From: Basidiobolus meristosporus CBS 931.73
Lineage: Eukaryota > Fungi > Basidiobolomycota
DNA: 53,112 nucleotides
Assembly: GCA_002104905.1 (NCBI GenBank)
Contig: MCFE01000610.1
Location: 1-53,112, forward strand
Direction: 5' to 3'
The position numbers and the translations under genes are program-made. The notes under the pieces are model-generated. The model made no database searches. It had not been told where the DNA came from and saw only the letters and a list, made by a program, of their open reading frames with translations. Each line of letters opens with the position of its first letter. The first letter of the stretch is position 1. Shown here piece after piece: positions 843 to 53,112 of this stretch.

Positions 843-1100
843 ATACGACTCAATACCGTTCTCTCCTCCTTAAACATGGTACTGCCAACCTGCGTATCAA
901 CCTTGGCTCATGGCAACACATGACTGCCGGGCCATTGGATACCGTAAGCATAACTCCCGGACCACCCGGCACCTCCGCCAAAGCAATCCTGTACCTTTCT
1001 GTGCAAGATTGCAACAGGAAAAGGACCAGGTTTGCTGCGATTACCTCGAAACTACGGAAAAGAAGTGACCGTTGGAGCAGTGAGAGTCTCTGCTAACCAG
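843..1100 (+). pseudogene. Family C pseudogene (deletion across the intron; ATG>ATA)
   Basis: Aligns to exon 1 and exon 2 of 6199-6625 with the intervening segment missing. Start and stop codons are mutated. Confidence 0.75.
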
Positions 1101-1225
1101 CATTCTCAATAAGAGTCATAATCACATGGCCATTCACTATCAATAGATAAAATGCAACGGTACTTTATTCAAGCACACAGACAAGCTATGTTGTTGGAGT
1201 GAATGAAAACCTTGATTGTTATTAT

Positions 1226-1675
1226 TTAGCAATCCCAGTCGCATCCACCATACCCTCCATATCCCCCGTAGCGTCCATATCCCCACCGACCTCCATAACC
1301 ACCGTAGCGACCGTAACCTCCTCGTCCCCAGTATCTGCCCCTCCGCCGCCCATATCCACCGTATCTCCCCCATAGCTGGGCCTCTTCAGGATTGCCCTCC
1401 TCTTCCTCGACTCCTTGGTCGGCGCCTTGCTTGCTCGAGATAGTCTGATCAAACGTATTCCTCGACATCTGGCCGAGAATGCCATCGATGTAGTGTCGAA
1501 TATTCTGCGCATCCTCTTCCCTGTTGGACGAGAACTTCTTCACCATTTGACCGCTTTGCGGGTTCTTATCGGAGATGGATGCGCTCGCTACATTTGTGCT
1601 TGACACATCTACGGGACTTCCAAAGGCACTAACGACCATTAGTAGAGCACAGGCTGCGGTAAGTTGTTTGTACAT
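1226..1675 (-). CDS. Secreted Gly/Tyr/Arg-rich peptide precursor, family A copy 1 (149 aa)
   Basis: ATG at 1675 (MYKQLTAACALLMVVSAFG, signal-peptide-like), acidic pro-region, then WGRYGGYG...GGCDWDC-stop. TATA box ~40 bp upstream and AATAAA on the minus strand at ~1165. The ORF track start at 1696 is an upstream TTG. Intact paralogs are conserved. Confidence 0.9.
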   Translation of the reverse strand: MYKQLTAACALLMVVSAFGSPVDVSSTNVASASISDKNPQSGQMVKKFSSNREEDAQNIRHYIDGILGQMSRNTFDQTISSKQGADQGVEEEEGNPEEAQLWGRYGGYGRRRGRYWGRGGYGRYGGYGGRWGYGRYGGYGGYGGCDWDC

Positions 1676-1713
1676 TGTGAATGTTGAATACTCCAATAAA
1701 GCTCAGCACCAGC

Positions 1714-1722
1714 CTTTATATA
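1714..1722 (-). promoter_or_regulatory. TATA box of family A gene (TATATAAAG); equivalents at ~5108-5116, 7859-7867 and 7886-7894
   Basis: Consensus TATA element ~40 bp upstream of the ATG, conserved in all intact A copies. Confidence 0.65.
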
Positions 1723-1894
1723 CAGATACAAGATCGAGGTTGATTGATATCGCATCTAGGAAGCTTCGCGGAATCGATGGGTTTCGGACGAACGATATAT
1801 TATATTTTGCATCTATTCTACAGGCATTAGGAAGATACAATAAGAGCTTCTAGAGTAGTGTTATCATGCGAAAAAAAATGACTACTAACAGTAC

Positions 1895-1984
1895 ACCATT
1901 AAAAGGTAAAAATTGACAGCATTGAAGGTAAAACTTGACCGCATTTAAAGGTAAAGATTGGCACCATTTATGAAGATAATTGAC
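1895..1984. repeat. Imperfect 22-23 bp tandem repeat x4
   Basis: accattaaaaggtaaaaattgac / agcattgaaggtaaaacttgac / cgcatttaaaggtaaagattggc / accatttatgaagataattgac. Confidence 0.7.
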
Positions 1985-2139
1985 AGCCAAACTGCAATAA
2001 GACTTATCTTTGCCTAGACATCCACCTTATCCATACACATATCCGACTTTCTCTCCATGCTGCAGCTTGGTAAACATCACTGATTAATTACGATGAGCAA
2101 TGTCATTATGATGTTTATTAAACGTAAGGATGTAGTGCA

Positions 2140-2559
2140 TTAGCAACCCCAGTCGCATCCACCATAGCCACCATATCCCCCGTAGCGCCCATATCCCCAT
2201 CGGCCTCCGTAGCCACCATAGCGACCGTAACGTCCTCGTCCCCAGTATCTGCTTCCCCATCTTCCATAGCCACCATACCTACCCCAAAGCTCGGCCTCTT
2301 CTGAGTCAGTGTCTTCACTTGTAGGAGACGCTTGTTCATCTGCCAACCCACCGCCTGACATTTGGCCGAATATGTCGTCAAGAATGGCGCGAGCATCTTC
2401 GTCTTTTGTGGACTGGAATCGTGTTATCATTTTGCCGCTTTGTGGGTCCCGGATGGAGATGGAAGCACTTGCTACATTGGTTGCTTCTGGCTGCACAGGG
2501 GTTGCCACCGCATATGAGGCAATTAGGAGAGCAAAGGTGACGGAGAAGTGCTTGTACAT
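2140..2559 (-). CDS. Secreted Gly/Tyr/Arg-rich peptide precursor, divergent family B copy (139 aa)
   Basis: ATG at 2559 (MYKHFSVTFALLIASYAVA), TATATATA at 2596-2603. The 48-aa C-terminal peptide is 43/48 identical to copy A1 while the signal and pro-regions are diverged. Confidence 0.9.
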   Translation of the reverse strand: MYKHFSVTFALLIASYAVATPVQPEATNVASASISIRDPQSGKMITRFQSTKDEDARAILDDIFGQMSGGGLADEQASPTSEDTDSEEAELWGRYGGYGRWGSRYWGRGRYGRYGGYGGRWGYGRYGGYGGYGGCDWGC

Positions 2560-4240
2560 TGTGAATCTGAATGAAGCACTTGAGCTGATTATGAGTATAT
2601 ATACCCGCACAGCAGAAGCTGATGATGGAGCTTATTAAAGACACTCAACTTTACCTCTGCCTTCAGTGGGAAGCGCTGCGGGTGATCCATTTGGCTGTTC
2701 AATAGAAGCTGTTTAGTGGCTCTTCATTCAATCAAACACGCATAACACAACAAAAAGCTTAAAAAGATCATTTGTTTAGCAGATATGTTACAGGTTAGCC
2801 ACCTCCATATTAACCATATGCTAATATTGATTGTGTGAACTTCCAGTTGCAGTCATCTCCATGTACCAATGTATCCTGTCACTGTAGCGTCATTATCCCT
2901 TTCTGTTGATGCCATAGATTCCTTTATATCTTCATATTTACTGAAGAATGGCATGATTGATGACATCTCTTGAGCCAACTCCAGCATTTATTCCCAGTCG
3001 GTTACACATACGGTTAACCTGCCGCAGTAAATCCTGAAGAATATACTTGGTCGGTGTATGGTAAGCGGAATTAGTAAGCTCCAAGTTAGGCTGCAATAAT
3101 ATAAAAATTAGTGTACTTATCGAATATATTCTCAGTGCATATAGCTTGTTGTAAGTTCATGCTAGCTGATATTGGAAGGGGCTGCGGTTCAAGCACTGAG
3201 AACTAGCTGCGATCATTATTACTAAATGACAACCATTGATTGCGTCAAGTATTCCATTTTCATTCTTAGTTGTACAGTATCTGTTGCAAATATCTTCAAA
3301 TATTGGGATATTGTGGAGAATATAGGGCACTTGATATTGTGGACAATATAGGGTACTTGATAGTACAACACTGATTTAGAAGTGTCTAAAATGAGGAAAG
3401 CAGAGGCCTATTGTACCTGGGCAGCCTGTAAGCAATTATCAATCATCAATTACATAGAGAACTTAGTAAGTTTGTTTATCTATCATAGCCATCATGGTTA
3501 TTGAACAAACGCTCAAAAGATACTCTCCACAAAGCTCAGATGGTCATAAGATCTTATCCGTGCTGTGGGGCAGACGAGAGGTTGAATCAGAATCCTCGTA
3601 TGGAAGGCGGTGAGGGACAGCCGTGGCAGGGAGTGATGGAGGTTCCATAGGACGTAATCCCCGTCTGTCATCGCGTATCTCCCCGGTTTTGTCCTCACGT
3701 CTTTAGCAAAGTCTTCGAGCACCCCGACCTTGTGGAACCTTTCACTAAGCAACGATACTTGTATTTCACTTGGGATAAATACCTAAGTAGGTAAAGCCTT
3801 TCACCTTATCCACACATCAACCGGGCGTGTATTTCACCACCACTATCAGTAATGGAAAGGCTATAAAGATTCGTGTTTTGAATAGATTTCCACAAGAGCC
3901 AGTGAGTTCTTTCACTCTACGAATATATATGCATGCATTCGATCCGGTTTTATACTTACAGCGAATAGAAATTCAAGCCACGCACACTAAAACAAGCTAC
4001 TCATACTATAAAATTGTAGCGCCCGTACTTCACTTGACTTAAGCCTTATTATGTTACTAGTAGCAAGGAACGGGCTCGCTTGGCTAGAAACTGAAGTGAG
4101 GGTAATACACCCAGGAGTGATCAAATATTCCCCTTCATTGCCATGGTAACTCTGCCCATCTCTCCTTGCCTACCGTCCCTATCCCCTTAAAGCTCTATAC
4201 AGTCCTCTTCAGTATCCAATTCAGTGGTGAAACACACACA

Positions 4241-4503
4241 ATGCGATTCAATACCCTTCTCTGCTCCTTAACCGTGTCAACATCAGCTCATGTCAACACG
4301 TGACCTGCGAACCGGTAGATATCACAAGCATCACTTCCGGTCCACCCGGCACCTCCGCCAAAGTAATCCTGTACCCTTCCCTGCAAGATTGCAACCGTAA
4401 AAGGAACACGACTGCTACGATTACCTCTAAACAACTCGAGATATACATCGCGAAGTACGGAAAAGAAGTGACCGTTGGAGCAGTGAGAGTCTCTGCCAAC
4501 TAG
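4241..4503 (+). pseudogene. Family C pseudogene (deletion across the intron, frameshift)
   Basis: MRFNTLLCSLTVSTSAHVNT-stop. The exon-2 homologue (ORF 4300-4503) is out of frame. Confidence 0.75.
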
Positions 4504-4628
4504 CATTCTCAATAAGAGTCATAATCACATGGCCATTCACTATCAATAGATAAAATGCAACGGTACTTTATTCAAGCACATAGGCAAGTTGTATTGTTGG
4601 AGTGGATGAAAGCCTTGATTCTTATTAT

Positions 4629-5069
4629 TCAGCAACCCCAGTCGCATCCACCATACCCTCCATATCCCCCGTAGCGTCCATATCCCCATCGACCTCCATA
4701 ACCACCGTAGCGTCCTCGTCCCCAGTATCTGCCCCTCCGCCGCCCATATCCGCCGTATCTCCCCCATAGCTGGGCCTCTTCAGGATTGCCGTCCTCTTCC
4801 TCGACATCTTGGTCGGCGTCTTGCTTATCCGAGAGGGTCTGATCGAACGTATTTCTTGACATCTGGCCGAGAATGCCATCGATGTAGTGTCGAATATTCT
4901 GCGCATCCTCTTCCTTGTTGGACGAGAACCTCTTCACCACTTGGCCACTTTGTGGATCCCTATCGGAGATGGATGCGCTCGCTACATTTGTGCTTGACAC
5001 ATCCACGGGACTTCCAAAGGCACTGACGACCATTAATAGAGCACAAGCTGCGGTAAGTTGTTTGTACAT
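4629..5069 (-). CDS. Secreted Gly/Tyr/Arg-rich peptide precursor, family A copy 2 (146 aa)
   Basis: Intact paralog of 1226-1675 with an in-frame 9-bp loss in the repeat domain (45-aa peptide). TATA box at ~5108-5116. Confidence 0.9.
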   Translation of the reverse strand: MYKQLTAACALLMVVSAFGSPVDVSSTNVASASISDRDPQSGQVVKRFSSNKEEDAQNIRHYIDGILGQMSRNTFDQTLSDKQDADQDVEEEDGNPEEAQLWGRYGGYGRRRGRYWGRGRYGGYGGRWGYGRYGGYGGYGGCDWGC

Positions 5070-5429
5070 TGTGAATGTTGAATACTCCAATAAAGCTCAG
5101 CACCAGTCTTTATATACAGATACAAGATGGAGGTTGATTGATATCGCATCTAGGAAGCTTCAGTCAAATGATGTAGTATATTTCGGAGGCAACCACCGCA
5201 GCCAAAGTACAAACACTCGATTTCTGTTAACAACAACACTAGTCGTGGTATAGAGATTTCTATACTATGTTATATGAAAGTGGCAAGTATTTATCTCGTA
5301 AACGGAAATGAGTTGATAAACAGCGAGAGCCTCAAAAGAGTGCCTCAAAAATTGTCATATATTTTGCATGATTTAGAGTTGCGGATGATCGCAATATTCG
5401 TAGTAAGCTTAACAGCATGGTGTATTAAA

Positions 5430-5636
5430 TTAGCATCCCAAACAAGCCCTCTAAGTTCCCAGCGACCATCATGGTCCCCGAAGTGACCATAACGTCCTCG
5501 TCACCTGTTCACTCTGGTGCGAGCGTCTTCTTCGTACACACCGTTTCCGGGCTTTGGAGAAGAGGTGGACACACTTGCCACAATGGCTGTACCGGAATTT
5601 AAAAAGCATTAAAACGATGGAAAAGTACTTGCGCAA
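5430..5636 (-). pseudogene. Decayed family B precursor
   Basis: Minus strand reads LRKYFSIVLMLF (cf. MYKHFSVTFALL), then after a frameshift IVASVSTSSPKPG..EEDAR..stop-RGRYGH..GRW. Start codon lost, internal deletions. Confidence 0.7.
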
Positions 5637-6198
5637 GGTGAAGACCAAAGGATAAACGGAGCCTCCTCTTGTGTATCCTTAACGTTGTCAATCCTATACC
5701 ACCATTTGTCGTTCATCATCAAAAGGCATCACCACCACCTGCCTTCCTTCATCAGGAGACGAATGAGTGGGCTACCTATGTGTAACACTCAAAATTCCCT
5801 CGAACAAACTAAGAATGCACTCAATATTTATAGCCTCAGTGTAACAGAAACTACAACACTTTGTTTACGCCTAGATCGCACTCACCGTATTCTACGTAAG
5901 TCTCGCTATGATACTAATGGAAGTGAGCAGGCAAAGCATCCGCGCCACATATGCAGGCCAACATTAGTCATCCTGGTGTTATTGAACAATACAAGGATCA
6001 GCAGTTTCTCCTAAAAAAGAAGTGCTTAGCCCAAAGGCAATTTGGAGTGAATGCGATACTACGGTATATAGTATAAAATATTCCGCTTCATCATAATGGT
6101 AGCTCAGCCTGTCTCTCCTTACAAGCCCAGCTAATTCCCTATAAAATCGCTTGTAATGCTTACCTTATTCATCAGGCATACACACAAAAGCACTCACA

Positions 6199-6625
6199 AT
6201 GCGATTCAATACCGTTTTCTGCTCCTTAGCCATGGCACTGCTAGCCTGCACAACAACTTCAGCACAATCCTCTAGAGCGTTACTAAGTATGTAATCAGTA
6301 TATAACTCAACTAGCCGCAACCAGTGAGCCTTACTAACCAAATACTTACAATGTAGAATTGGTGAATACTCCTGAAGATACCGCACAACAACTACCATTC
6401 TCAGCTGGCTCATGCCAACGCGTGACCTTTGGACCGGTGGATACTGCCAGCATCACCCCCGAATCACCCAGTACCTCTGCCCAAGCCATCTTGTATCCTT
6501 CTCTGCAAGATTGTAACAATCGCAGGAACAGGATTGCTGCTATAACATCCAATCAACTCGAGGTACATATCGCTAAGAATGGAAAAGAAGTGACTGTTGG
6601 AGCAGTAAGAGTATCTGTCAGCTAG
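6199..6625 (+). CDS. Small secreted two-Cys protein, family C, spliced (exons 6199-6286 and 6357-6625; 118 aa)
   Basis: Exon 1 encodes MRFNTVFCSLAMALLACTTTSAQSSRALL (signal-peptide-like). A phase-1, 70-nt intron joins in frame to ORF 6359-6625. TATAAAA at 6140-6146. Confidence 0.85.
6287..6356 (+). other. Spliceosomal intron, 70 nt
   Basis: GTATGT donor, TACTAAC branch point at 6332-6338, TAG acceptor. Its removal keeps the reading frame. A second copy lies at 9044-9113. Confidence 0.85.
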
Positions 6626-6967
6626 CATCCTCAATAAACCGCATTGTTTAGCCAAGAGTTATAAAGAATGCATCACATTAAATATACACAGCCAGAATGA
6701 AAGAGCAACTGTAACAGACTAGTGAACGGAAGCCTAGAATATGCCTACACATCATTATGATTATCCAGCAAAAGGTGAATGGAGTGTATCCACCGTAGCG
6801 ATACTAGTAGCAAGGAACGGGCTCTCTTGGCTAGAAACTGAAGTAAGGGTGATACTCCCCTTCATTGCCATGGTAACTCCGCCTGTCTCTCCTTACCAAC
6901 CGTGCTTATACCCTTATAGCTCTATACAATCCTCTTCAATATTCAATTGAACGGTGAAACACACACA

Positions 6968-7245
6968 ATGCGATTCAATACCGTTCTCTGCTCCTTAACC
7001 GTGGCACTGCTAACCCGCATACCAACCTCGGCTCATGTCATCACGTGACCTGCTGACTGGTAGATACCGCAAGCATTACTTCCGGACCGCCCAGCACCTT
7101 CGCCAAAGCGATCCCGTACACTTCTCTGCAAGATTGCAACAGGAAAAGGAACTGGATTGCAACAATTACCTCCAAGCAACTCGAGATACACATCGCGAAG
7201 AACGGAAAAGTGACCTTTGGAGCAGTGAGGGCCTCTGCCAGCTAG
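6968..7245 (+). pseudogene. Family C pseudogene (same deletion, extra stop)
   Basis: MRFNTVLCSLTVALLTRIPTSAHVIT-stop. The exon-2 homologue is out of frame and has an internal TGA. Confidence 0.75.
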
Positions 7246-7370
7246 CACTTTAAATAAGCGTCATAATCACATGACCATTCACTACCAATCAATAAAATGC
7301 AACGGTACTTTATTCAAGCACACAGACAAGTGGTGTTGTTGGAGTGAATGAAAGCCTTGATTCTTACTAT

Positions 7371-7820
7371 TCAGCAACCCCAGTCGCATCCACCATACCC
7401 TCCATATCCCCCGTAGCGTCCATATCTCCACCGACCTCCATAACCACCGTAGCGACCGTAACCTCCTCGTCCCCAGTATCTGCCCCTTCGCCGCCCATAT
7501 CCCCCGTATCTCCCCCATAGCTCGGCCTCTTCAGGATCGCCCTCCTCTTCCTCGACATCTTGGTCGGCGTCTTGCTTATCCGAGAGAGTCTGATCGAACA
7601 TATTCCTTGACATCTGGCCGAGAATGCCATCAATATAGTGCCGAATATTCTGCGCATCCTCTTCCTTGTTTGACGAGAACCTCTTCACCACTTGGCCGCT
7701 TTGTGGGTTCCTATCGGAGATGGATGCGCTCGCCATATTTGTGCTTGACACATCCACGGGACTTCCAAAGGCACTGACGGCCATTAGTAAAGCACAAGCT
7801 GCGGTAAGTTGTTTGAACAT
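7371..7820 (-). CDS. Secreted Gly/Tyr/Arg-rich peptide precursor, family A copy 3 (149 aa)
   Basis: Intact ORF MFKQLTAAC...GGCDWGC with the same architecture. The TATA segment upstream is duplicated. Confidence 0.9.
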   Translation of the reverse strand: MFKQLTAACALLMAVSAFGSPVDVSSTNMASASISDRNPQSGQVVKRFSSNKEEDAQNIRHYIDGILGQMSRNMFDQTLSDKQDADQDVEEEEGDPEEAELWGRYGGYGRRRGRYWGRGGYGRYGGYGGRWRYGRYGGYGGYGGCDWGC

Positions 7821-8955: not shown

Positions 8956-9368
8956 ATGCGATTCAATACCGTTTTCTGCTCCTTAGCCATGGCACTGCTA
9001 GCCTGCACGTCAACTTCAGCACAATACTCCAGTGCGCTACTAAGTATGCCATCAGTATATAACTCAACTAGCCACAACCAGTGAGGCTTACTAACCAAAT
9101 ACTTACAATGTAGAATTGGTGAATACTCCTGAAGATACCGCACAGCAACTACCATTCTCAGCTGGCTCATGCCAACGCGTGACCTACTGCCAGCATCACC
9201 CCGGAATCACCTAGCACCTGCGCCCAAGCAATCCTGTATCCTTCTCTGCAAGATTGTAACAATCGCAGGAACAGGATTGCTGCTATAACATCCAATCAAC
9301 TCGAGGTACATATCGCGAAGAACGGAAAAGAAGTGACTGTTGGAGCAGTAAGAATATCTGTTAACTAA
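8956..9368 (+). pseudogene. Family C copy with intact intron but a 14-nt frameshifting deletion
   Basis: Intron at 9044-9113. TTTGGACCGGTGGA is missing after GTGACC (~9184), giving an early TAG. Confidence 0.8.
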
Positions 9369-9489
9369 TGCTCAATAAACCGCATTGTTTAGCCAAGAGA
9401 TACACATAATGCTCAAGCGTACAGACTGGTGAACGAAAACCTGGAATATGCCTACACATCACTCTGATTATCCAGCAAAAGGTGAATGG

Positions 9490-9712
9490 AGTGTATCCAC
9501 CATAGCCTCCATATACACCATAGCAACCATAACGTCCTTGTCCTCTGTATCTCCCCCGCCCACCGTCTATATCTACCCCATAGCTTCAGGATTGCTCTCC
9601 TCTTCTTTGAATCCTTGGTGGACACCTTATTTGCCCGAGAGTCTAACGAAACGTATAGAATGTCTTTGATATAGTGCCGAATGTTCTGCGCATCCTCTTC
9701 CTTCCTCAACAA
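9490..9712 (-). pseudogene. 5'-truncated, frameshifted family A precursor
   Basis: EEDAQNIRHYIKDIL..KLWGRY, then after a frameshift GRYRGQGRYGCYGVYGGYGGY. No signal peptide and no CDWxC end. Confidence 0.75.
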
Positions 9713-11428: not shown

Positions 11429-12430
11429 ATGCCCACAACTCCACTTTCCTCCGAGATATCTAAGCTGCTTATTGCACTACAGAATGTCTCTGATAGGGAT
11501 CAGCTATTTGAGCTCCTCCGCGTCTTCCTTGGCCTCCTTTTACGTGAAAAAGGCTTTGTGGATATTATACTGCGGGATTGTTTTCTGTCAGCTTTGCTAT
11601 CTGATGGGATCCGGAAAGATGGTGATATATCTACACCACCCCCAACTACACGATCTCTTATGAAAGGCAAAGAACCTTTGCTAACATCACCCTCATCACC
11701 AGTACCTTGTACTCAACCTCTCCCCTTCCAAGCCAATTCCTCCCTAGCACATTGTGCCCAAGCACTCCCCTCCCAAGCCAACTCCCCGCTGTTCCATCAT
11801 ACTCAAGCTCCCCCCTCCCAAGCTAATTCCTTGCTTGAACATCGTACTCAAGCTGCCCCCTCCCAAGCCAATTCCTTGCCGTCAAATAATTGTCAGGTAA
11901 AATGTGGTGCTAATCACTTCCTTCAGAAGTTGGCAGCAACAATCAAGCTTCATCAGGACTCTCCAAAGGATCTGAATCTAATTGCAGATCTTGATCCTTC
12001 CAAGCATTTTCAAGAAATACTCAATAGCCGACCTGCTTTGCCAGTGGTCCAGATTTCCAGGCTGAGCAATTCTGTGGAGCAGCTGAACGGTCTTGGAGAA
12101 CTGGCCCTAATTCTGTCTAACATCCGCCTTTATCGGCTTGGAAGTATTTATGTTGACTTTTGTAGGGGTCAAATTGCTGATAACCCAAGTTGGAGACGTT
12201 TGACCCGTATTGGTATTACCAGAAAGCTCCGCTCAGCCTTACGCGTGCAAGCCGCTGCATGCCATCAGCCACTTAACTACTCAGCTGTAAAGGCAAACCT
12301 AGAGAGAGGAGCATCTCTATATTGTCTTGCCAGCTTCTTGGGTCTTTTGGTTTTACAGTATACTGATACAGTAACCGCAAGAAGAATTAGCGAGCTGTCT
12401 CCTGGATGCTGGGAGCTGGTGATTCAGTAG
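11429..12430 (+). CDS. Hypothetical protein (333 aa) with a Pro/Ser/Gln repeat linker; possibly transposon-associated
   Basis: 1-kb uninterrupted ATG-to-stop ORF in otherwise stop-riddled DNA. No family recognised. Confidence 0.55.
   Translation: MPTTPLSSEISKLLIALQNVSDRDQLFELLRVFLGLLLREKGFVDIILRDCFLSALLSDGIRKDGDISTPPPTTRSLMKGKEPLLTSPSSPVPCTQPLPFQANSSLAHCAQALPSQANSPLFHHTQAPPSQANSLLEHRTQAAPSQANSLPSNNCQVKCGANHFLQKLAATIKLHQDSPKDLNLIADLDPSKHFQEILNSRPALPVVQISRLSNSVEQLNGLGELALILSNIRLYRLGSIYVDFCRGQIADNPSWRRLTRIGITRKLRSALRVQAAACHQPLNYSAVKANLERGASLYCLASFLGLLVLQYTDTVTARRISELSPGCWELVIQ
11711..11880 (+). repeat. In-frame 45-bp coding minisatellite (~3.7 units; QxxPSQANSxLxHxT)
   Basis: QPLPFQANSSLAHCA / QALPSQANSPLFHHT / QAPPSQANSLLEHRT / QAAPSQANSL. 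Confidence 0.85.
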
Positions 12431-19879: not shown

Positions 19880-22800
19880 TCCACAGACATGTAACTGAAT
19901 TTCAGCATGTGAATCTTCTTTCTCACAGCAGCCACTGGTTGCTCACTGGCATGTGACTGACAACCATGTTGCTAATTTTTAATTTGACAGCAGCCACTTG
20001 TTGCCTGTGGACATGTGACCAACAAACATGATTCTAATTTAATGTAACAGCAGCTACTTGTTGCTCACAGACATGTGACTAAAAACATACACATTAATGA
20101 TCAGGCTAACAGCAGCTACCAAATGCCCACAAATATGTGACTGAATGTCAGAATGCCAAATTCCTTACTGACATGTGACTGAATTCCAGCATGCCAATTT
20201 TCTTTCTAACGGCTGCCACTGGTTGCTCACAGGCATGTGACTGACAATCATAATGCTAATTTTTAATCTGACAGCAGCTACTGGTTGCTTACAGACATGT
20301 GACTTAAAATCATTATGCTAAATTTAATCTGACAGCAGCCACTTGTTGCCCACAGACATGTGACTAAAAACCATCAGAATATTGATCAGGCTGACAGCAG
20401 CCACCGGTTGCCCACAGACATGTGACTAAATTTCAGCATGCTAATTTTCTTTCCAACAGCAGCCACTGGTTGCCCACAGACATGTGACTGAATTTCAGCA
20501 TGCTAATATTCTTTCTGAGAGCAGCCACTGGTTGCCCACAGACATGTTACTGAATTTCAGCTTGCCAGTTTTCTTACTGACAGCAGCCACTGGTTGCCCA
20601 CAGACATGTGACTGAATTTCAGCTTTCCAGTTTTCTTACTGACAGCAGCCACTGGTTGCCCTGAGACATGTGACTGAATTTTGGCTTGCCAGTTTTTACT
20701 GACAGCAGCCACTGGTTGCCCACAGACATGTGACTGAATTTCAGCATGCTAATTTTCTTTGCAACAGCAGCCACTGGTTGCCCACAGACATGTGACTGAA
20801 TTTTGGTCTGCCAGTTTTGTCACTAACAACAGCCGCTAGTTGCCCTGAGACATGTGACTGAATTTCAGCATGCTAATTTTCTCTGTGATAGCAGCCACTG
20901 GTTGCCCACATACATGTGATTGAATTTCAGCTTGCCAGGTTTTACTGACAGCAGCCACCGGTTGCCCACAGACATGTGACTGAATTTCAGCATGCTAATT
21001 TTCTTACTGACAGCAGCCACTGGTTGCCCACAGACATGTGACTGAATTTCAGCATGCTAACTTTCTTTCTGAGAGCAGCCACTGGTTGCCCACAGACATG
21101 TGATTGAATTTCAACTTGCCAGTTTTCTTACTGACAGCAGCCACTGGTTGCCCACAGACATGTGACTGAATTTCAGCATGCTAATTTTCTTTCTGACAGC
21201 AGCCACTGGTTGCGCACAGACATGTGACTGAATTTCAGCATGCTAATTTTCTTTATGAGAGCAGCCACTGGTTGCCCACAGACATGTGACTGAATTTCTG
21301 CTTGCCAGTTTTCTTACTGACGGCAGCCACTGGTTGCCCACAGACATGTGACTGAATTTCAGCTTGCCAGTTTTCTTACTGACAGCAGCCACTGGTTGCC
21401 CACAGACATGTGACTGAATTTCAGCATGCTAATTTTCTTTCTGAGAGCATCCACTGCTGGCCACAGACATGTGACTGAACTTCAGCTTTCCAGTTTTCTT
21501 ACTGACAGCAGCCACTGGTTGCCCTGAGACATGTGACTGAATTTTGGCTTGCCAGTTTCTACTGACAGCAGCCACTGGTTGCCCACAGACATGTGACTGA
21601 ATTTCAGCATGCTGATTTTCTTTGCGACAGCAGCCACTGGTTGCCCACAGACATGTGACTGAATTTTGGTCTGCCAGTTTTGTCACTAACAACAGCCGCT
21701 GGTTGCCCTGAGACATGTGACTGAATTTCAGCATGCTAATTTTGTCTGTGATAGCAGCCACTGGTTGCCCACATACATGTGATTGAATTTCAACTTGCCA
21801 GGTTTTACTGACAGCAGCCACCGGTTGCCCACAGACATGTGACTGAATTTCAGCATGCTAACTTTCTTTCTGAGAGCAACCACTGGTTGCCCACAGACAT
21901 GTGACTGAATTTCAGCTTGCCAGTTTTCTTACTGACAGCAGCCACTGGTTGCCCACATTCATGTGACTGAATTTCAGCATGCTAATTCTCTTTATGAGAG
22001 CAGCCACTGGTTGCCCACAGACATGTGACTGAATTTCAGCATGATAATTTGTCTTACTGACAGCAGCCACTGGTTGCCCACAGACATGTGATTTCAGCAT
22101 GCTAACTTTCTTTCTGAGAGTAGCCACTGGTTGCCCACAGTCATGTGACTGAACTTCAGCATGCTAATTTTCTTTCTGAGAGCAGCCACTGGTTGCCCAC
22201 AGACATGTTACTGAATTTCAGCTTGCCAGTTTTCTTACTGACAGCAGCCACTTGTTGCCCACAGACATGTGACTACAAGCCATCAGAATATTGATCATAC
22301 TGACAGCAGCCACTGGTTGCCCACAGACATGTGACTGAATTTCAGCATGCTAATTTTCTTTCCGACAGCAGCCACTGGTTGCCCACAGACATGTGACTGA
22401 ATTTCAGCATGCTAATATTCTATCTGAGAGCAGCCACTGGTTGCCCACAGACATATTACTGAATTTCAGCTTGCCAGTTTTCTTACTGACAGCAGCCACT
22501 GGTTGCCCACAGACATGTGACTGAATTTCAGCTTTCCAGTTTTCCTACTGACAGCAGCCACTGGTTGCCCTGAGACATGTGACTGAATTTTGGCTTGCCA
22601 GTTTTTACTGACAGCAGCCACTGGTTGCCCACAGACATGTGACTGAATTTCAGCATGCTAATTTTCTTTGCGACAGCAGCCACTGGTTGCCCACAGACAT
22701 GTGACTGAATTTTGGTCAGCCAGTTTTGTCACTAACAACAGCCGCTGGTTGCCCTGAGACATGTGACTGAATTTCAGCATGCTAATTTTCTCTGTGATAG

Positions 22801-25800
22801 CAGCCACTGGTTGCCCACATACATGTGATTGAATTTCAGCTTGCCAGGTTTTACTGACAGCAGCCACCGGTTGCCCACAGACATGAGACTGAATTTCAGC
22901 ATGCTAATTTTCTTACTGACAGCAGCCACTGGTTGCCCACAGACATGTGATTGAATTTCAGCATGCTAATATTCTATCTGAGAGCAGCCACTGGTTGCCC
23001 ACAGACATGTTACTGAATTTCAGCTTGCCAGTTTTCTTACTGACAGCAGCCACTGGTTGCCCACAGACATGTGACTGAATTTCAGCATGCTAATATTCTA
23101 TCTGAGAGCAGCCACTGATGCCCACAGACATGTTACTGAATTTCAGCTTGCCAGTTTTCTTACTGAAAGCAGCCACTGGTTGCCCACAGTCATGTGACTG
23201 AATTTCAGCATGCTAATTTTCTTTATGAGAGCAGCCACTGGTTGCCCACAGACATGTGACTGAATTTCAGCTTGCCAGTTTTCTTACCAACAGCAGCCAC
23301 TGGTTGCCCACAGGCATGTGACTGAATTTCAGCATGCTAATTTTCTTTATGAGAGCAGCCACTGGTTGCCCACAGACATGTGACTGAATTTCAGCTTGCC
23401 AGTTTTCTTACCGACAGCAGCCACTGGTTGCCCACAGGCATGTGACTGAATTTCAGCATGCTAATTTTCTTACTGTCAGCAGCCACTGGTTGCCCACATA
23501 CATGTGACTGAATTTCTGCTTGCCAGTTTTCTTACTGACAGCAGCCACTGGTTGCCCACAGGCATGTGACTGAATTACAGCATGCTAATTTTCTTTGCGA
23601 CAGCAGCCACTGGTTGCCCACAGACATGTGACTGAATTTCTGCTTGCCAGTTTTCTTACTGACAGCAGCCACTCGTTGCCCACAGGCATGTGACTGAATT
23701 TCAGCATGCTAATTTTCTTTCTGAGAGCATCCACTGGTTGCCCACAGACATGTGACTGAATTTCTGCTTTCCAGTTTTCTTACTGACAGCAGCCACTGGT
23801 TGCCCTGAGACAGGTGACTGAATTTTGGCTTGCCAGTTTTTACTGACAGCAGCCACTGGTTGCCCACAGACATGTGACTGAATTTCAGCATGCTAATTTT
23901 CTTTGCAACAGCAGCCACTGGTTGCCCACAGACATGTGACTGAATTTTGGTCTGCCAGTTTTGTCACTAACAACAGCCGCTGGTTGCACTGAGACATGTG
24001 ACTGAATTTCAGCATGCTAAATTTCTCTGTCATAGCAGCCACTGGTTGCGTACATACATGTGATTGTATTTCAGCTTGCCAGGTTTTACTGACAGCAGCC
24101 ACCGGTTGCCCACCAACATGTGACTGAATTTCAGCATGCTAATTTTCTTACTGACAGCAGCCACTGGTTGCCCACAGACATGTGACTGAATTTCAGCTTG
24201 CCAGTTTTCTTACCGACAGCAGCCACTGGTTGCCCACAGTCATGTGACCAAATTTCAGCTTGTTTTCTTACTGACAGCAGCCACTGGTTGCCCTGAGACA
24301 GGTGACTGAATTTTGGCTTGCCAGTTTTTACTGACAGCAGCCACTGGTTGCCCACAGACATGTGACTGAATTTCAGCATGCTAATTTTCTTTATGAGAGC
24401 AGCCACTGGTTGCCCACAGACATGTGACTGAATTTCAGCATGATAATTTGTCTTACTGATAGCAGCCACTGGTTGCCCACAGACATGTGACTGAATTTCG
24501 GCTTGCCAGTTTTTACTGACAGCAGCCACTGGTTGCCCACAGACATGTGACTGAATTTCAGCATGCTAATATTCTATCTGAGAGCAGCCACTGGTTGCCC
24601 GCAGACATGTGACTGAAATTCAGCATGCTAATTTTCTTACTGACAGCAGCCACTGGTTGCCCACAGACATGTGACTGAATTTCAGCTTGCCAGTTTTTAC
24701 TGACAGCAGCCACTGGTTGCCCACAGACATGTGACTGAATTTCCGCATGCTAATTTTCTTTCTGAGGGCAGCCACTGGTTGCCCGCAGACATGTGACTGA
24801 AATTCAGCATGCTAATTTTCTTACTGACAGCAGCCACTGGTTGCCCACAGACATGTGACTGAATTTCAGCTTGCCAGTTTTTACTGACAGCAGCCACTGG
24901 TTGCCCACAGACATGTGACTGAATTTCCGCATGCTAATTTTCTTTCTGAGGGCAGCCACTGGTTGCCCACAGACATGTGACTGAATTTCAGCATGCTAAC
25001 TTTCTTTCTGAGAGCAGCCACTGGTTGCCCACAGACATGTGACTGAATTTCAGCTTGCCAGTTTTCTTACTGACAGCAGCCACTGGTTGCCCACAGACAT
25101 GTGACTGAATTTCAGGATGCTAACTTTCTTTCTGAGAGCAGCCACTGGTTGCCCACAGACATGTGACTGAATTTCAGCTTGCCAGTTTTCTCACTGACAG
25201 CAGCCACTGGTTGCCCACAGACATGTGACTGAACTTCAGCATGCTAATTTTCTTTCTGAGAGCAGCCACTGGTTGCCCACAGACATGTTACTGAATTTCA
25301 GCTTGCCAGTTTTCTTACTGACAGCAGCCACTTGTTGCCCACAGACATGTGACTAAAAACCATCAGAATATTGATCAGGCTGACAGCAGCCACCGGTTGC
25401 CCACAGACATGTGACTGAATTTCAGCATGCTAATTTTCTTTCCGACAGCAGCCACTGGTTGCCCACAGACATGTGACTGAATTTCAGCATGCTAATATTC
25501 TTTCTGAGAGCAGCCACTGGTTGCCCACAGACATGTTACTAAATTTCAGCTTGACAGTTTTCTTACTGACAGCAGCCACTGGTTGCCCACAGACATGTGA
25601 CTGAATTTCAGCTTTCCAGTTTTCTTACTGACAGCAGCCACTGGTTGACATGAGACATGTGACTGAATTTTGGCTTGCCAGTTTTTATTGACAGCAGCCA
25701 CTGGTTGCCCACAGACATGTGACTGAATTTTGGTCTGCCAGTTTTGTCACTAACAACAGCTGCTGGTTGCCCTGAGACATGTGGCTGAATTTCAGCATGC

Positions 25801-28450
25801 TAATTTTCTCTGTGATAGCAGCCACTGGTTGCCCACATACATGTGATTGAATTTCAGCTTGCCAGGTTTTACTGACAGCAGCCACCGGTTGCGCACAGAC
25901 ATGTGACTGAATTTCAGCATGCTAATTTTCTTACTGACAGCAGCCACTGGTTGCCCACAGACATGTGACTGAATTTTAGCATGCTAACTTTCTTTCTGAG
26001 AGCAGCCACTGGTTGCCCACAGACATGTGACTGAATTTCAGCTTTCCAGTTTTCTTACTGACAGCAGCCACTGGTTGCCCTGAGAAATGTGACTGAATTT
26101 TGGCTTGCCAGTTTTTACTGACAGCAGCCACTGGTTGCCCACAGACATGTGACTGAATTTTGGTCTGCCAGTTTTGTCACTAACAACAGCCGCTGGTTGC
26201 CCTGAGACATGTGACTGAATTTCAGCATGCTAACTTTCTCTGTGATAGCAGCCTCTGGTTGCCCACATACATGTGATTGAATTTCAGCTTGCCAGGTTTT
26301 ACTGACAGCAGCCACCGGTTGCCCACAGACATGTGACTGAATTTCAGCATGCTAATTTTCTTACTGACAGCAGCCACTGGTTGCCCACAGACATGTGATT
26401 TCAGCATGCTAACTTTCTTTCTGAGAGCAGCCACTGGTTGCCCACAGACCTGTGACTGAATTTCAGCTTGCCAGTTTTCTTACTGACAGCAGCCACTTGT
26501 TGCCCACAGTCATGTGACTGAATTTCAGCATGCTAATTTTCTTTATGAGAGCAGCCACTGGTTGCCCACAGACATGTGACTGAATTTCAGCATGATAATT
26601 TGTCTTACTGACAGCAGCCACTGGTTGCCCACAGACATGTGATTTCAGCATGCTAACTTTCTTTCTGAGAGCAGCCACTGGTTGCCCACAGACCTGTGAC
26701 TGAATTTCAGCTTGCCAGTTTTCTTACTGACAGCAGCCACTGGTTGCCCACATTCATGTGACTGAATTTCAGCATGCTAATTTTCTTTATGAGAGCAGCC
26801 ACTGGTTGCCTACAGACATGTGACTGAATTTCAGCATGATAATTTGTCTTACTGACAGCAGCCACTGGTTGCCCACAGACATGTGATTTCAGCATGCTAA
26901 CATTCTTTCTGAGAGCAGCCACTGGTTGCCCACAGACCTGGGACTGAATTTCAGCTTGCCAGTTTTCTTACTGACAGCAGCCACTGGTTGCCCACAGTCA
27001 TGTGACTGAATTTCAGCTTGCTAATTTTCTTTCTGACAGCAGCCACTGGTTGCCCATAGATATGTGATTGAATTTCAGCTTGCCTGTTTTCTTACTGACA
27101 GCAGCCACTATTTGCTCACAGACATGTGACTGAATTTCAGCATGCTAATTTTCTTTCTGATAGCTGCCACTTGTAACCACAGACATGTAACTCAGCTTCA
27201 GCATGCAAAATTTCTTACCAACAGCAGCCTCTTGTTGCCTATAGACATGTGACTGATATTTATAGTGCTAATCTTCTCTCTGACTGCAGTCACCAGTTGT
27301 ACACAGTCATGTAACTAAAAACAATGCATTAATTTTCAGTTCTGACAGCAACCTCAGGATGCCCTTAGACCTGTGATTGAATTTAGCCACCAGTTGCCAA
27401 TAGACATGTGGCCAAAATCATTTTTTTAATTTTCTCACTGTGTACTCTAATGTCAGCCCCTGATTGCCTACAGACATGTGATAACAATCATATAGTTATT
27501 TATCTGTTTTTGACTCTGACAGCAGCCACTGGATATCCACTAAGATGTTGCTGAAACTTAAGATTCTAATTTTGTACAGTCAGTAGCCACTAGTTTTACA
27601 CAGAAATATGACTGAAATTCACCATGCAATCTTTTTTCTGACAGCTGCCATTGGTTGCAAACAAACATGCAACTCAGATCATTTAGTTGAGCCTCTTGCC
27701 GCAGAATCCAACAGCAGCCACTGAATGCCCACAGACATGTCATCAAAAATATTTAGAGAATCTTCTCACTCTTGTCTATAATGGCAGCCACCGGTTACCC
27801 AGAGACATGTTACCAAAAGTATCTTGTTATTTTTCAAATTTGACTGCAGCCATTGGCTGCCTACAGACCAGTGAATGAAATTTACTGTGCTAATTTTAAC
27901 CATGAGAAGCTACTGGTTGTCCAAAAACACATGACCCAAATAAAATAAGTCAAATCTCAAGTCTAAAAGCTGCCGCTTGGTGACCACAGACATGTGACTG
28001 AAATCTAATGTGCCAATTTTCTCATTGAAAGTAGTCACTGGTTGTCCACAGGAAGCCCACAGACCTGCAACTCACATTCACTGTGCTAAGTTTACATCTG
28101 AAAGCAGCTACAGATATAGTACTAACATACAATGAGTTAATCTTCAAATCTGACATCTTCCACTGCCTGCCAGGAACCTATGACAGAACACCTTTAAGTC
28201 AATTTTACAATCAGACAGCTGCTATAGGTAGCATACAAATGTGGGACTGAAAAATTAAGTTAATTTTCTATCCAACAACAGCTACTGGATCCCAGCAGAT
28301 ATGTGACCTATATTTGACAAACAAATTTTAATCTGATGCCAGCTACTGGAATCCTTCAGCTGTATGCCAAAAAATTATCATATAATTTACACAAACAATG
28401 TGAAGCCACCGGATATTTACAGTATCATGTGTCTGCCCACTCTTAGATGA
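19880..28450 (+). repeat. Satellite array I, 60-62 bp monomer (homogeneous ~20340-27150, about 110 monomers; degenerate flanks)
   Basis: Tandem CTGACAGCAGCCACTGGTTGCCCACAGACATGTGACTGAATTTCAGC plus a variable linker (atgctaattttc.., ttgccagttttc..). Measured periods are 60-62 bp. Confidence 0.97.
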
Positions 28451-39299: not shown

Positions 39300-42200
39300 G
39301 TATGTATATTACTGTTGCAAGTCCTTCAATAAGAGTTGTAGAGGAATAGGGGGTTTAGATAGAATTCTATTCAAAAATCCTGAACTGATCTTTGTTGAGG
39401 TTCCAGCATCTGCTTCTATACACTTTGCCAGCTCAACTGTTGACCAATGGTACTTCCTGATATAGGTTATGGAAGATGACTCATTGTTTGCATCATTGTC
39501 ACCCAAATAAATCTTTATGATTCAGCATTGTCAGTAAGTCTTTCAAGCTTAAGTCTGTGTCTATAAGTTAGATTTTCTGGGATATTTCCTTGTTTGTCTA
39601 TTTGATGGTCAGTTGCAAATTGACATTCTCATGATCTTGAGTGGTCCAGTCTATTGTGGCTCAAACTTGTTCTGAATATTGTTTCTTAGCAATACAAAGT
39701 TCCCAACTCCCAAAGCCTCTGGTGATTAGTCTTATCAAATCTCTCCCTAATGTTTTCTGCATTTTTAGAGACATTGGCCTGTGTCTCCTGATGTTTTGTT
39801 CCAATTATATGTGTCTACTAGGCAGACCAAGCTCACTCTACAAGTTGTAAGTGTGAGATCTCCTGCAATCCATGATTCACATCCATACACTAAGTAAAAT
39901 GTCAATAGTTGGGATGTGTTATCATCTTAACTTTGCAGGCAAACATTGCTTGGACAATACCTTTGTCCCATTTGCTTACAGCTCCATTTTTGTACTTGGT
40001 CAGTATTTTTCCACAAAATCCATTAAACCACTCAGTGTATGTATTAGTTCTGGAGTAATATTCAAAAGTTTTCAAAAGTTTGATCTGCAGCATTTCATGT
40101 TAGGCTTTCTATGATTCTGCAACAATATATGCTTGTCTATCAGTTGAGATTCACTCAGTGCATCCAAGCTTCATCAGGATCTGATAATAAATGAAACTTT
40201 CAACTTCTTATTCATTGGCTATTTGGTGGCATGGTCAATAGGCATTAGAATCTCCTAATTGCATTTTCTAGTAATGGGCAGTCATCCAATAAAGTTGATA
40301 CCCCAAGCAACATTGGAGCATTAGGCAATAGGGCTTTCACCATTGATTTGGTTTAGTGTCTTATCCTGTACTACATATTTGTTAGCTTCATCCTGGATAA
40401 TTTTCTTGATATGTTCATCCACCTGATCAGGATTGGCTTTGTCTTCCAAGTGCCTTGGTAATAGGCTGGGCCAATCTGATTCATTAATCAGATAGAGCTG
40501 CACAACTTGTTCTAGTCTTGATAAGGCCTCAGTAGTAGTGATATTTTTCCCAGGGAAGAAGACTATCTCCAGGTCAAATTGTTGAATGTAGTCACCCCAT
40601 CTTGCTGTTTGTATGGATGGTACCCTCTGTATAAATGTACTTGAGTCAGGGGTGATCAGTCCCCACAGTGCACTTGACTCTTTCAATGTAGCTTGCCATG
40701 TCTTTAGGCAGAATATCATGGCAAGCATCTCCTGCTCATCCACTGGATAGTTTTGTTACACCTAGTTCAGTTTCTTGGACTCAAAAGCAACCAGGTATCC
40801 CTTTCTCTCATGCACTTGGCTCAGGACTGTGCCAAATGCATAATCTGAGGCTTCTATGCAGCAATTGAGCTCTTTGTGAAAATTACATAATCATGAGCTT
40901 GGCAGCTTACAAAGGTTATTGGTGAGCATCTGTAAAGCAGTATCACAGGCAATACCCCACTAGGAGGTGTATTTTGTGAGGATATGAGTCAAAGGTGCTG
41001 TAATACATGCAAAAGACTTAACAAATCTACAGTAAAACAAAACTATTACAAGAAATGATCTGAGCTCTGAAATGCTATGAGGCTGCTTTGCAATCTTAAT
41101 AACTGCCACTTTCTTGTGGTTCTGTGTCACTGCCTTGCTAGTCATTATGTATCTCAGATACTCAACATGTTCCATGAAGAACTCACACTTTGCTGGCCTA
41201 GCACAAGGCTAATTTTGCTGAACATGGTGGCTCCATTGAGTTGGTCCAAGGCTCATCAATCTGTTATATAAAGTACTTATTCCTCACAGTAACTGAGCCA
41301 AGAGCTCTGTAGTCAGTGCACATCCTAAGTATTCTATCCTTTTTTTTCACAAAAAGCACTAGCGCTCCCCAAGGTGACTTGCTGGGCCTGATGTATTCTT
41401 GTTCCAATAGTTGATCAATATACCTCTTCATCTCTTCCAAACCCAGTGGACATATCCTCTAAGGTGCCTTTCCCACTGGGGGCTATATCCTGTGTCAATA
41501 GCATGATCCACATCCTTGACTGTTGATATGCTTTAAAGTTAATCAGGGAACATATCTGAATACACCTTTGAAAGAGTTTGGATTTTCTGGGGAACTGGGG
41601 AAGAGGAATAAGCATCTAACACCACCATGAGAAACATTTGTGTATCTTTCCTAAGTGCTCTACAGTACTGAATATTTCTAATTTCACTTGTGCCCAATAC
41701 ACCGGTGCTGACCAAGTTGAACTCCAGTATGGCAGGTAGTGGGTCATAGGTCAGGTTGCCTTTTTGGCTCTGATTGGCATGGGTGCTGCAATTGATTGAT
41801 GGAATATGTTCAAATAGCCATGTTTTTCCAAGTACTAGCTCATACTTGCAGTTTCCATATGATCAGCTGTTGTGACTGAAGTTAATTTGTCAGATCCAAA
41901 TTTGATTCCTGCTTTCCAGGTAAAATGCTCTGACATTTACATGTGTGATGCCCTTGAGTCATTCATGATTTTAACAAGTACTCCATTGCTTACTTCATAC
42001 TAGTATAACAGTTTCTCTGAGCCTGAAGTCATCTGGGATAAGTATTCTTCTGTCATATAAAAGGTGAGTTCTGAGTCTTCTTCAAGTTCATCTTTCACTT
42101 TACTCTATTCTTGGCGTCAGTATGCTCAAAGATTCCAATGGTAATATTGCAAGATGGTCCCATCCAGGTGGCAATTGAAACCTAGTCCTTTCTTCTTGCA

Positions 42201-52300: not shown

Positions 52301-53112
52301 CTAAATATAGCATGATGGTTTTAAGTCACATGTCTGTGGGCAACCAGTGGCTGCTGTCAGCCTGATTCTAGCGTGATGGTTTTTAGTCACATGTCTGAGG
52401 GAACCAGTGGATGCTGTCAGCCTGATTTTAACGTGAGGGTTTATGTCACAAATTTGCATGCAGAAATTCAGTCACAAGTCTGTGGGCAACCAGTGGCTGC
52501 TGTCAGCCTAATTATAGCGTAATAGTTTTTAGTCACATGTCTGTGGGCAATAAGTGGCTGCTGTCAGCCTGATTCTAGCATGATGGTTTTTAGTCACATG
52601 TCTGAGGTCAACAAGTGGCTGCTGTCAGCCTAAATATAGCATGATGGTTTTAATTCACATGTCTGTGGGCAACCAGTGGCTGCTGTCAGCCTGATTCTAG
52701 CGTAATGGTTTAGACACATGTCTGAGGGCAACCAGTGGCTGCTGTCAGCCTGATTTTAACGTGAGGGTTTATGTCACAAATTTGCATGCAGAAATTCAGT
52801 CACATGTCTGTGGGCAACAAGTGGCTGCTGTCAGCCATATTTTAGGGTATTGGTTTTTGGTCACATGTCTGTGGGCAACATGTGACTGCTGTCAGCGTGA
52901 TTCTAGTGTGATTGTTTTTAGTCACATGTCTGAGGGCAACCAGTGGCTGCTGACAGCCTGATTTTAACGTGAGGGTTTATGTCACATTTCTGTTGTCAAC
53001 AAGTGGCTGATGTCAGCCTAAATATAGCATGATGCTTTTAAGTCACATGTCTGTGGGCAACCAGTGGCTGCTGTCAGCCTGATTCTAGCGTAATGGATTA
53101 GTCACATGTCTG
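43400..53112 (-). repeat. Satellite array II, ~59-62 bp monomer, inverted relative to array I, about 155-160 monomers, runs off the window end
   Basis: GTCACATGTCTGTGGGCAACCAGTGGCTGCTGTCAGC (reverse complement of the array I core) plus a 22-25 bp linker family (ctgattctagcgtgatggttttta and variants). Confidence 0.97.

Follow-up and report, generated by a model that had tools for sequence, protein, structure and literature searches.

A multicopy gene family of Basidiobolus meristosporus that may encode charge-masked precursors of a secreted glycine-, tyrosine-, and arginine-rich cationic peptide

What is made by a cluster of small genes whose products share a near-invariant tail of glycine, tyrosine, arginine, and tryptophan? 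The genes lie between positions 1226 and 7820 of contig MCFE01000610.1 of Basidiobolus meristosporus CBS 931.73 (assembly GCA_002104905.1), and the window analyzed here is the whole stretch from position 1 to position 53,112 (53,112 nucleotides [nt]). A first-pass annotation, made from the letters alone, had proposed a fungal family of secreted precursors that release a conserved 48-amino-acid (aa) peptide; the fungal origin agrees with a protein word-index search, which places the window in this strain. We read the encoded proteins as secreted, charge-masked precursors of a glycine-rich cationic peptide, the tail being freed or unmasked outside the cell, and give this reading a probability of roughly 0.55. 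New to the present analysis are tail-less homologues in Basidiobolus ranarum, selection tests by domain and by frame, a chimera of the two subfamilies (A and B), a promoter comparison, and the recognition that public gene models of the family are misframed.

Exactly four intact copies (A1, A2, A3, and B; coordinates in Table 1) are present in the window, all on the minus strand, according to a six-frame list of open reading frames (ORFs) and a motif scan, and none of the four needs an intron. A2 and A3 belong to the A-type cluster, and gene B represents a B-type cluster of 11 members. Each protein has a hydrophobic N-terminus, an acidic region of 72 to 82 aa (the N-module), an EEA(Q/E)L junction (EEAQL in A1 and A2, EEAEL in B and A3), and a tail of 45 to 48 aa that begins with Trp, which is the layout originally described. 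The N-termini reach Kyte-Doolittle maxima of 2.2 to 2.6 and carry small residues at −3/−1 (...SAFG followed by S, or ...AVA followed by T), features that point to a signal peptide in all four proteins and hence to secretion.

The tail of A1 uses only six residue types (21 Gly, 10 Tyr, 9 Arg, 4 Trp, 2 Asp, and 2 Cys in 48 aa; a recount returned the figures first given). Tails consist of three Trp-initiated Gly/Tyr/Arg segments of 14 to 15 residues each, followed by a C-x3-C end of the form C-D-W-x-C (CDWDC in A1; CDWGC in B, A2, and A3), whose two cysteines may pair in a disulfide to close a small C-terminal loop. YGGYG is present four times in each 48-aa tail, and length variants are deletions of repeat units (3 aa in A2 and 6 aa in a copy at L001 16090). 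In physical terms, the tails are 5.1 to 5.5 kDa, with a charge of +7 to +9, a pI of 9.9 to 10.2, 9 to 10 Tyr, 8 to 10 Arg, and 4 to 5 Trp. Across 16 aligned tail-bearing proteins, the junction Leu is invariant and the Trp that follows it is nearly so. The tails of A1 and B differ at 5 of 48 residues (5.0 nonsynonymous and 16.0 synonymous differences), so that the 43/48 identity reported at the outset is exact, whereas the whole proteins, which diverge widely in their signal peptides and N-modules, are 56% (BLASTP) or 60% (MAFFT alignment) identical. A glycosylphosphatidylinositol (GPI) anchor and C-terminal amidation are ruled out by the sequence, which has no hydrophobic C-terminus and ends in Cys.

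Low-complexity DNA keeps several frames open at these genes, and the frame that is translated can be recognized from how the copies have diverged. Among 23 intact copies, drawn from the window and from six other contigs of the same genome, variable tail sites fall on codon positions 3, 1, and 2 in the ratio 24:10:3. When A and B tails are compared frame by frame, frame 0 has a proportion of synonymous differences (pS) of 0.42, a proportion of nonsynonymous differences (pN) of 0.054, and a pooled pN/pS of 0.13; one antisense frame gives a ratio of 0.29, and the remaining four give 0.97 to 13. Only frame 0 behaves as coding; the genes are real and maintained by selection. The public models of A1 (P0009 = K493DRAFT_320099, partial) and of its paralogues P0006 to P0013 use tiny introns that shift translation into the +1 frame and yield an acidic 'GDT...VATVVMEV' protein, a frame that is ruled out by its pN/pS of about 1 or higher. 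As such, several public gene models of this family are misframed and should be corrected; the exact A1 protein is absent from public collections.

Selection is distributed unevenly along the protein. Pooled Nei-Gojobori counts over all A-versus-B pairs (which are not independent, in a family in which recombination occurs) give a pN of 0.34 and a pS of 0.52 in the signal peptide (nonsynonymous-to-synonymous rate ratio [omega] about 0.5), a pN of 0.32 and a saturated pS of 0.74 in the acidic module (omega not estimable), and a pN of 0.040 and a pS of 0.43 in the tail (omega about 0.06), which supports the earlier suggestion of selection on the peptide. Within subfamilies, too, constraint is strongest in the tail (omega of 0.08 to 0.12). 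Gene conversion is ruled out as the sole cause of this conservation because synonymous divergence in the tail remains high between subfamilies, although the synonymous rate (dS) of 0.64 in the tail, below that of the saturated N-module, may reflect older gene conversion.

The family is as expanded as had been supposed: an exact look-up finds at least 39 distinct proteins (28 A-type and 11 B-type) on at least 10 contigs of B. meristosporus CBS 931.73. Blocks on other contigs are 92 to 96% identical to the first 9 kb of the window with intergenic DNA included, a divergence that marks them as segmental duplicates or homeologues and not as assembly duplicates. Many copies are truncated or frameshifted (frameshifted examples are P0002 and P0006 to P0013). 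Among copies truncated at the 5′ end, which begin MANADQGVEEEE..., some stay open to CDWGC and are annotated as genes of 49 to 62 aa, and others contain premature stops; these copies are likely pseudogenes.

Expression signals accompany the intact genes. An alignment of upstream regions places a TATA element about 35 to 47 nt upstream in both subfamilies (TATATA in B-type genes), and A and B types have an ATTCACA-ATG start context in common within flanks that otherwise cannot be aligned. The A-type polyadenylation-type signal is listed in Table 1; in B-type copies, a separate AATAAA follows the stop after about 20 nt. At L003 2190-2639, an intact A-type ORF has lost the upstream segment that holds the TATA box in other copies and may be silent despite its open frame.

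A profile of the signal peptide and acidic region was searched against 1.84 billion representative proteins for relatives of the N-module. All full-length significant matches (E up to 0.001) are to Basidiobolus, among them P0044 of B. ranarum (E of 1.1e-7); the tenth and weakest match, P0046 (1,806 aa, E of 5e-5), consists of nine short stretches that cover profile positions 20 to 42 only. A follow-up search added two further B. ranarum homologues, P0048 and P0049, for three in all, and P0049 matches A1 at 5e-18 and B at 5e-14 by BLASTP. These homologues align over the whole N-module and retain the motifs that it has in both B. meristosporus subfamilies (NVASxSxS, P-x-x-G, KF-S, EDA, and I-x-x-M-S). 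They break off within an acidic stretch where the B. meristosporus proteins have the junction, and in no frame of their contigs does Gly/Tyr coding sequence come next. Upstream of the homologue on L007 is a sulfotransferase gene (PF13469) at 265-1679. Because the B. ranarum proteins stop at the junction without a tail, the front half of the meristosporus proteins appears to be an older, self-standing secreted module that also occurs on its own, and either the tail was gained in the B. meristosporus lineage or it was lost from these B. ranarum genes. Such homologues make the family a tractable case of the gain or loss of a peptide module in a secreted protein.

Charge follows the same division. 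The N-module carries −7 to −12, roughly balancing the +7 to +9 of the tail, in line with the masking acidic pro-piece of the first-pass annotation, whereas the net charge of the tail-less B. ranarum proteins is only 0 to −3; extra acidity thus accompanies the tail, which fits charge compensation that evolved together with it. What had been described as a processed cationic peptide system stands in its gene anatomy, its charge balance, and the selection on its tail. The pro-region is indeed acidic and charge-balancing, but it is more than a spacer, being homologous to proteins that stand alone in another species.

In the mechanism that we favor, the acidic module would neutralize the tail and escort it through the secretory pathway, after which the tail would be freed or unmasked extracellularly, most simply by a cut at the Leu-Trp junction made by a protease other than Kex2; the freed 5.1- to 5.5-kDa tail would then act as a glycine-rich cationic peptide. 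The tail has the sequence hallmarks of the glycine-rich cationic class of antimicrobial peptides (AMPs): 21 of 48 residues are Gly, the charge is strongly positive, there are three repeated segments, and disorder is predicted (predicted local distance difference test [pLDDT] below 50). AlphaFold2, run on a 17-row alignment, gives a mean pLDDT of 46, a disordered tail, and a mostly disordered N-module, with predicted helices confined to residues 54 to 83 internally and to residues 4 to 15 in the signal peptide.

No described family accommodates these proteins. Pfam returned nothing above threshold for the four proteins or the B. ranarum homologues (PF07172 GRP came closest, at 10.7 to 14.1 bits and E of 0.077 to 0.85 in two of the four proteins, against a gathering threshold of 30 bits). 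NCBIfam returned no family at E up to 1 for A1, for B, or for two members that carry the automatic UniRef name 'RSAM-associated Gly-rich repeat protein', a name left unsupported by any NCBIfam match; the automatic UniRef name 'RxLR effector protein' on P0048 is likewise unsupported, there being no Pfam match. A sequence profile search of the PDB found no relative, and the ESM Atlas held no usable match for the tail or the N-module. The tail-only word search was blank, low-complexity filters and length windows limiting what it could return, and no metagenome contig matched a degenerate DNA pattern for the ...GYGGCDWGC-stop end. The Basidiobolus literature on glycine-rich, secreted, or antimicrobial peptides yielded no description of the family, and we found no description in fungi of any ribosomal, linear, Gly/Tyr/Arg-rich cationic peptide family. 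The system accordingly remains undescribed, as first proposed: its pro-region matches no characterized family, and full-length relatives are, so far as these searches reach, found only in Basidiobolus.

Comparison with known systems yields functional likenesses to glycine-rich cationic peptide precursors with anionic pro-pieces, and no membership by sequence in a known family. Anionic-propiece precursors of cationic host-defense peptides are known, for example, in the mammalian alpha-defensins, where, as here, a signal peptide is followed by an anionic segment that roughly cancels a cationic C-terminal peptide; the sequences are unrelated, the Basidiobolus tail has no defensin fold or six-Cys pattern, and its anionic segment appears to be an older, independent module. 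Kex2-processed repeat proteins and the precursors of dikaritins (ribosomally synthesized and posttranslationally modified peptides) carry several cores between Lys-Arg or Arg-Arg sites and are encoded in enzyme clusters. They and the Basidiobolus proteins are alike as small secreted fungal precursors of short peptides, whose release takes place in the secretory pathway in the known systems and is only presumed here. The Basidiobolus proteins differ in their single tail and in a junction that offers no dibasic site, and the neighborhood (the window and the inspected flanks) contains no tailoring genes.

In nematode neuropeptide-like (NLP) and caenacin (CNC) precursors, the peptide starts at or near the end of the signal peptide and is cut out at basic sites. 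Neither trait is found in the Basidiobolus family, which interposes an acidic module of 72 to 82 aa before a single tail and has a Leu-Trp junction and a C-x3-C end. The two are alike in other respects, of which the YGG richness was noted at first sight: both are secreted (by prediction in Basidiobolus), encoded by clustered multicopy genes, and built from YGGYG-type Gly/Tyr repeats with Arg and Trp. The nematode nlp-29 cluster encodes peptides with YGGYG repeats, of which NLP-31 is antifungal (PMC11112505), so the antimicrobial role is known in the nematode, and the Basidiobolus resemblance is one of composition. Searches with the full protein, with the tail, and in the ESM Atlas gave no homologue outside Basidiobolus, within the limits set by low-complexity filters and length windows. 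Close in composition are the linear glycine-rich AMPs of arthropods and plants (armadillidin, acanthoscurrin, ctenidin, serrulin, and shepherin), with which the tail has in common about 44% Gly, a pI of about 10, few residue types, short internal repeats, and the lack of a stable fold (predicted in Basidiobolus); glycine-rich cationic arthropod AMPs are unstructured and repeat-built (PMC5031766). The Basidiobolus peptide stands apart in pairing Gly with Tyr, Trp, and Arg instead of Phe, His, and Asn or His, and in its Cys pair, its precursor architecture, and its kingdom.

Several points weigh against a processed precursor. The EEAxL-Trp junction contains neither Lys nor Arg and so offers no dibasic site, and the only dibasic run, an internal RRR in A-type tails, is RWGS in the B type; because of this replacement, no dibasic site is conserved across both types and Kex2 is ruled out as a general processing route. 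To our knowledge, no fungal secretory protease cuts after Glu-Ala-Gln/Glu-Leu. The N-module stands alone in B. ranarum; it may have a function of its own, and the whole protein may act uncut. Pooled pairwise rate ratios inherit the nonindependence of their pairs, and one copy (L005 7298-7717) is B-type in its signal peptide and N-module but A-type in its tail, which is 95% identical to A1 at the DNA level, and in its 3′ flank, evidence that crossover or gene conversion between A and B occurs. In many AMP families, the pro-piece is conserved and the mature peptide variable, the opposite of what is seen here, and near-perfect conservation combined with dosage amplification fits a bulk material equally well. 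Lastly, a run search lists no RNA run for positions 1000 to 6999 of the window.

As to what the cationic peptide would do, analogy suggests, tentatively and with somewhat less than an even chance, that it is antimicrobial or aids competition in gut and dung; its high content of Arg and Trp, life in the gut, and the clustering of multicopy genes all fit. We lean slightly toward this role over an adhesive or wall role, and the data do not separate the two. Because Basidiobolus lives among dense gut bacteria and makes adhesive spores, either role gives a testable molecule. If antimicrobial, the tail would represent a new fungal class of host-defense-like peptides that arose independently of those of nematodes and arthropods, and its precursor would be a clear-cut case, found in nature, of masking by an acidic carrier; should the tail instead be a glue or a matrix of the wall, no coacervate-type adhesive of an early-diverging fungus would have been defined by sequence before it.

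A structural or adhesive role for the tail is unlikely on balance, yet it accounts for much of what is observed. Here, Tyr, Arg, and Trp would serve as stickers and Gly as spacers in a coacervate formed alone or with polyanions, then cross-linked through Tyr (3,4-dihydroxyphenylalanine [DOPA] or dityrosine) and the two Cys, at the adhesive capilliconidial tip or in the thick spore wall, with amplification serving bulk production. Its size and composition, as had been pointed out, are indeed like those of mussel Mfp-3 (about 6 kDa, rich in Tyr/DOPA, cationic, and Trp-bearing; PMC12721214). Glycine-rich tick proteins double as cements and antimicrobials (PMC11772090), and the beak of the Basidiobolaceae capilliconidium is coated with adhesive material (PMC13370150). 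The resemblance to Mfp-3 and the tick cement proteins extends to a mass of about 5 to 6 kDa, positive charge, Tyr richness, Trp, and numerous gene variants, and a high copy number with a near-invariant product and the predicted disorder of the tail also suit a material. Against it, there is no sequence homology to any adhesive; the Basidiobolus proteins differ in having the acidic N-module and the Cys loop; and no modifying enzyme is encoded nearby, the window and the inspected flanks containing no tyrosinase, laccase, or peroxidase gene. The tail also lacks Asn and Lys, which are common in Mfp-3-type proteins, and a glue would not require exact positional conservation.

A more specific variant would make the tail a recent, lineage-specific graft, arisen by repeat expansion onto a preexisting secreted Basidiobolus protein with an acidic C-terminus to give a self-neutralized precursor, with the released tail phase-separating and cross-linking into the coacervate glue of the capilliconidial tip or into a spore-wall matrix. 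Taken jointly, these steps are improbable; were they true, the family would be a fungal convergent counterpart of the coacervate adhesives of mussels and sandcastle worms.

Similarly doubtful is an uncut, bipartite secreted protein whose N-module would keep the function that it has in B. ranarum and whose tail would serve as an added appendage for anchoring or multimerization, for example, on wall polysaccharides, nucleic acids, or anionic surfaces. The tail-less homologues do show the N-module to be a self-standing conserved unit, with motifs (NVASxSxS and EDA among them) kept in both subfamilies and in B. ranarum, and no processing site can be recognized at the junction. Yet the N-module evolves far faster than the tail (pN of 0.32 versus 0.04), and the Leu-Trp boundary and the matching of charges resemble the design of a precursor.

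Still less probable by a wide margin is a signaling or mimic peptide that imitates the YGGYG neuropeptide-like peptides of invertebrates and targets an animal host or vector. The fungus does travel through insects and the guts of herptiles, and YGGYG recurs four times in the tail. Nematode NLP-27 and NLP-29, which have the YGGYG repeat, act on neurons (PMC11112505). The likeness is compositional only, the tail word search and the ESM Atlas having given no homologue, and the tail departs from the NLPs in its length, its Arg and Trp content, and its Cys loop. Nonfunctional, repeat-borne ORFs, held open by chance in low-complexity DNA within a segmental duplication, might be suspected from the several open frames, the many truncated or frameshifted copies, the adjoining satellite DNA, and the missing RNA runs, but they can be practically dismissed given frame-specific purifying selection across about 0.4 to 0.7 synonymous changes per site, A1-type coding sequences on other contigs that are 98 to 99% identical against about 95 to 96% for the surrounding blocks, a promoter and start context conserved in both subfamilies, and homologues in a second species.

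Table 1. Coordinates of the peptide genes, their signals, and related features (positions without a locus label are those of the window)
Feature	Position	Strand	Description
Gene A1	1226..1675	-	Intact intron-less ORF, 149 aa from first ATG
A1 parts	signal peptide 1619-1675; acidic N-module 1373-1618; 48-aa tail 1229-1372; stop 1226-1228	-	
Gene B	2140..2559	-	Intact intron-less ORF, 139 aa from first ATG
B parts	signal peptide 2503-2559; acidic N-module 2287-2502; 48-aa tail 2143-2286; stop 2140-2142	-	Tail ends CDWGC
Gene A2	4629..5069	-	Intact intron-less ORF, 146 aa from first ATG
A2 parts	signal peptide 5013-5069; N-module 4767-5012; 45-aa tail 4632-4766; stop 4629-4631	-	
Gene A3	7371..7820	-	Intact intron-less ORF, 149 aa from first ATG
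A3 parts	signal peptide 7764-7820; N-module 7518-7763; 48-aa tail 7374-7517; stop 7371-7373	-	
Decayed fifth copy (pseudogene fragment)	9506..9701, approximate	-	70% identity to A1, mid-gene (blastn); frame broken (ORF 9452-9712)
TATA box TATATAAAGG	1713..1722	-	47 nt upstream of A1 start codon
AATAAA poly(A)-type signal	1164..1169	-	57 nt downstream of A1 stop; conserved in A-type copies
5′-truncated copies	L003 7021-7209; L005 12049-12237; L001 12001-12150; L001 17788-17965		Begin MANADQGVEEEE...; no signal peptide
Further 5′-truncated copies, no signal peptide	L002 7184-7361; L006 12817-12994		Begin MANADQGVEEEE...
Tail-less N-module homologues, B. ranarum	L007 3185-3532; L008 6946-7305		P0044, P0049; also P0048
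Second small secreted-protein gene, short copies	843..1092 (convergent to A1); 4286-4503; 6968-7245	+	blastn map, ORFs
Second small secreted-protein gene, long copies	6199-6625; 8956-9367	+	blastn map, ORFs

A second small secreted-protein gene is the co-duplicated context of the peptide genes. A short intron separates its signal-peptide exon from a second one, which ends ...KNGKEVTVGAVRVSVS, and several of its copies are decayed; the second exon, searched as a single-exon ORF, has no Pfam match. In the window and at six other loci alike, nearly every A-type gene faces a short version of it, which lies convergently 125 to 140 nt beyond the stop.

Elsewhere in the window, the sole long ORF outside the peptide-gene array (11429-12430, plus strand) encodes 333 aa with a repeated 'P-S-Q-A-N-S' and has no Pfam match, and a 140-aa ORF at 40321-40743 on the minus strand resembles a retroelement fragment by eye but has no significant Pfam match. 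A 61- to 62-nt satellite forms two arrays in opposite orientation, at 20170-27316 (about 116 copies) and 43666-53112 (about 150 copies), with higher-order periods of 121 to 208. The contig ends inside the second array, which puts the peptide-gene block in repeat-rich surroundings; of the related peptide-gene arrays retrieved, most sit within a few kb of a contig end.

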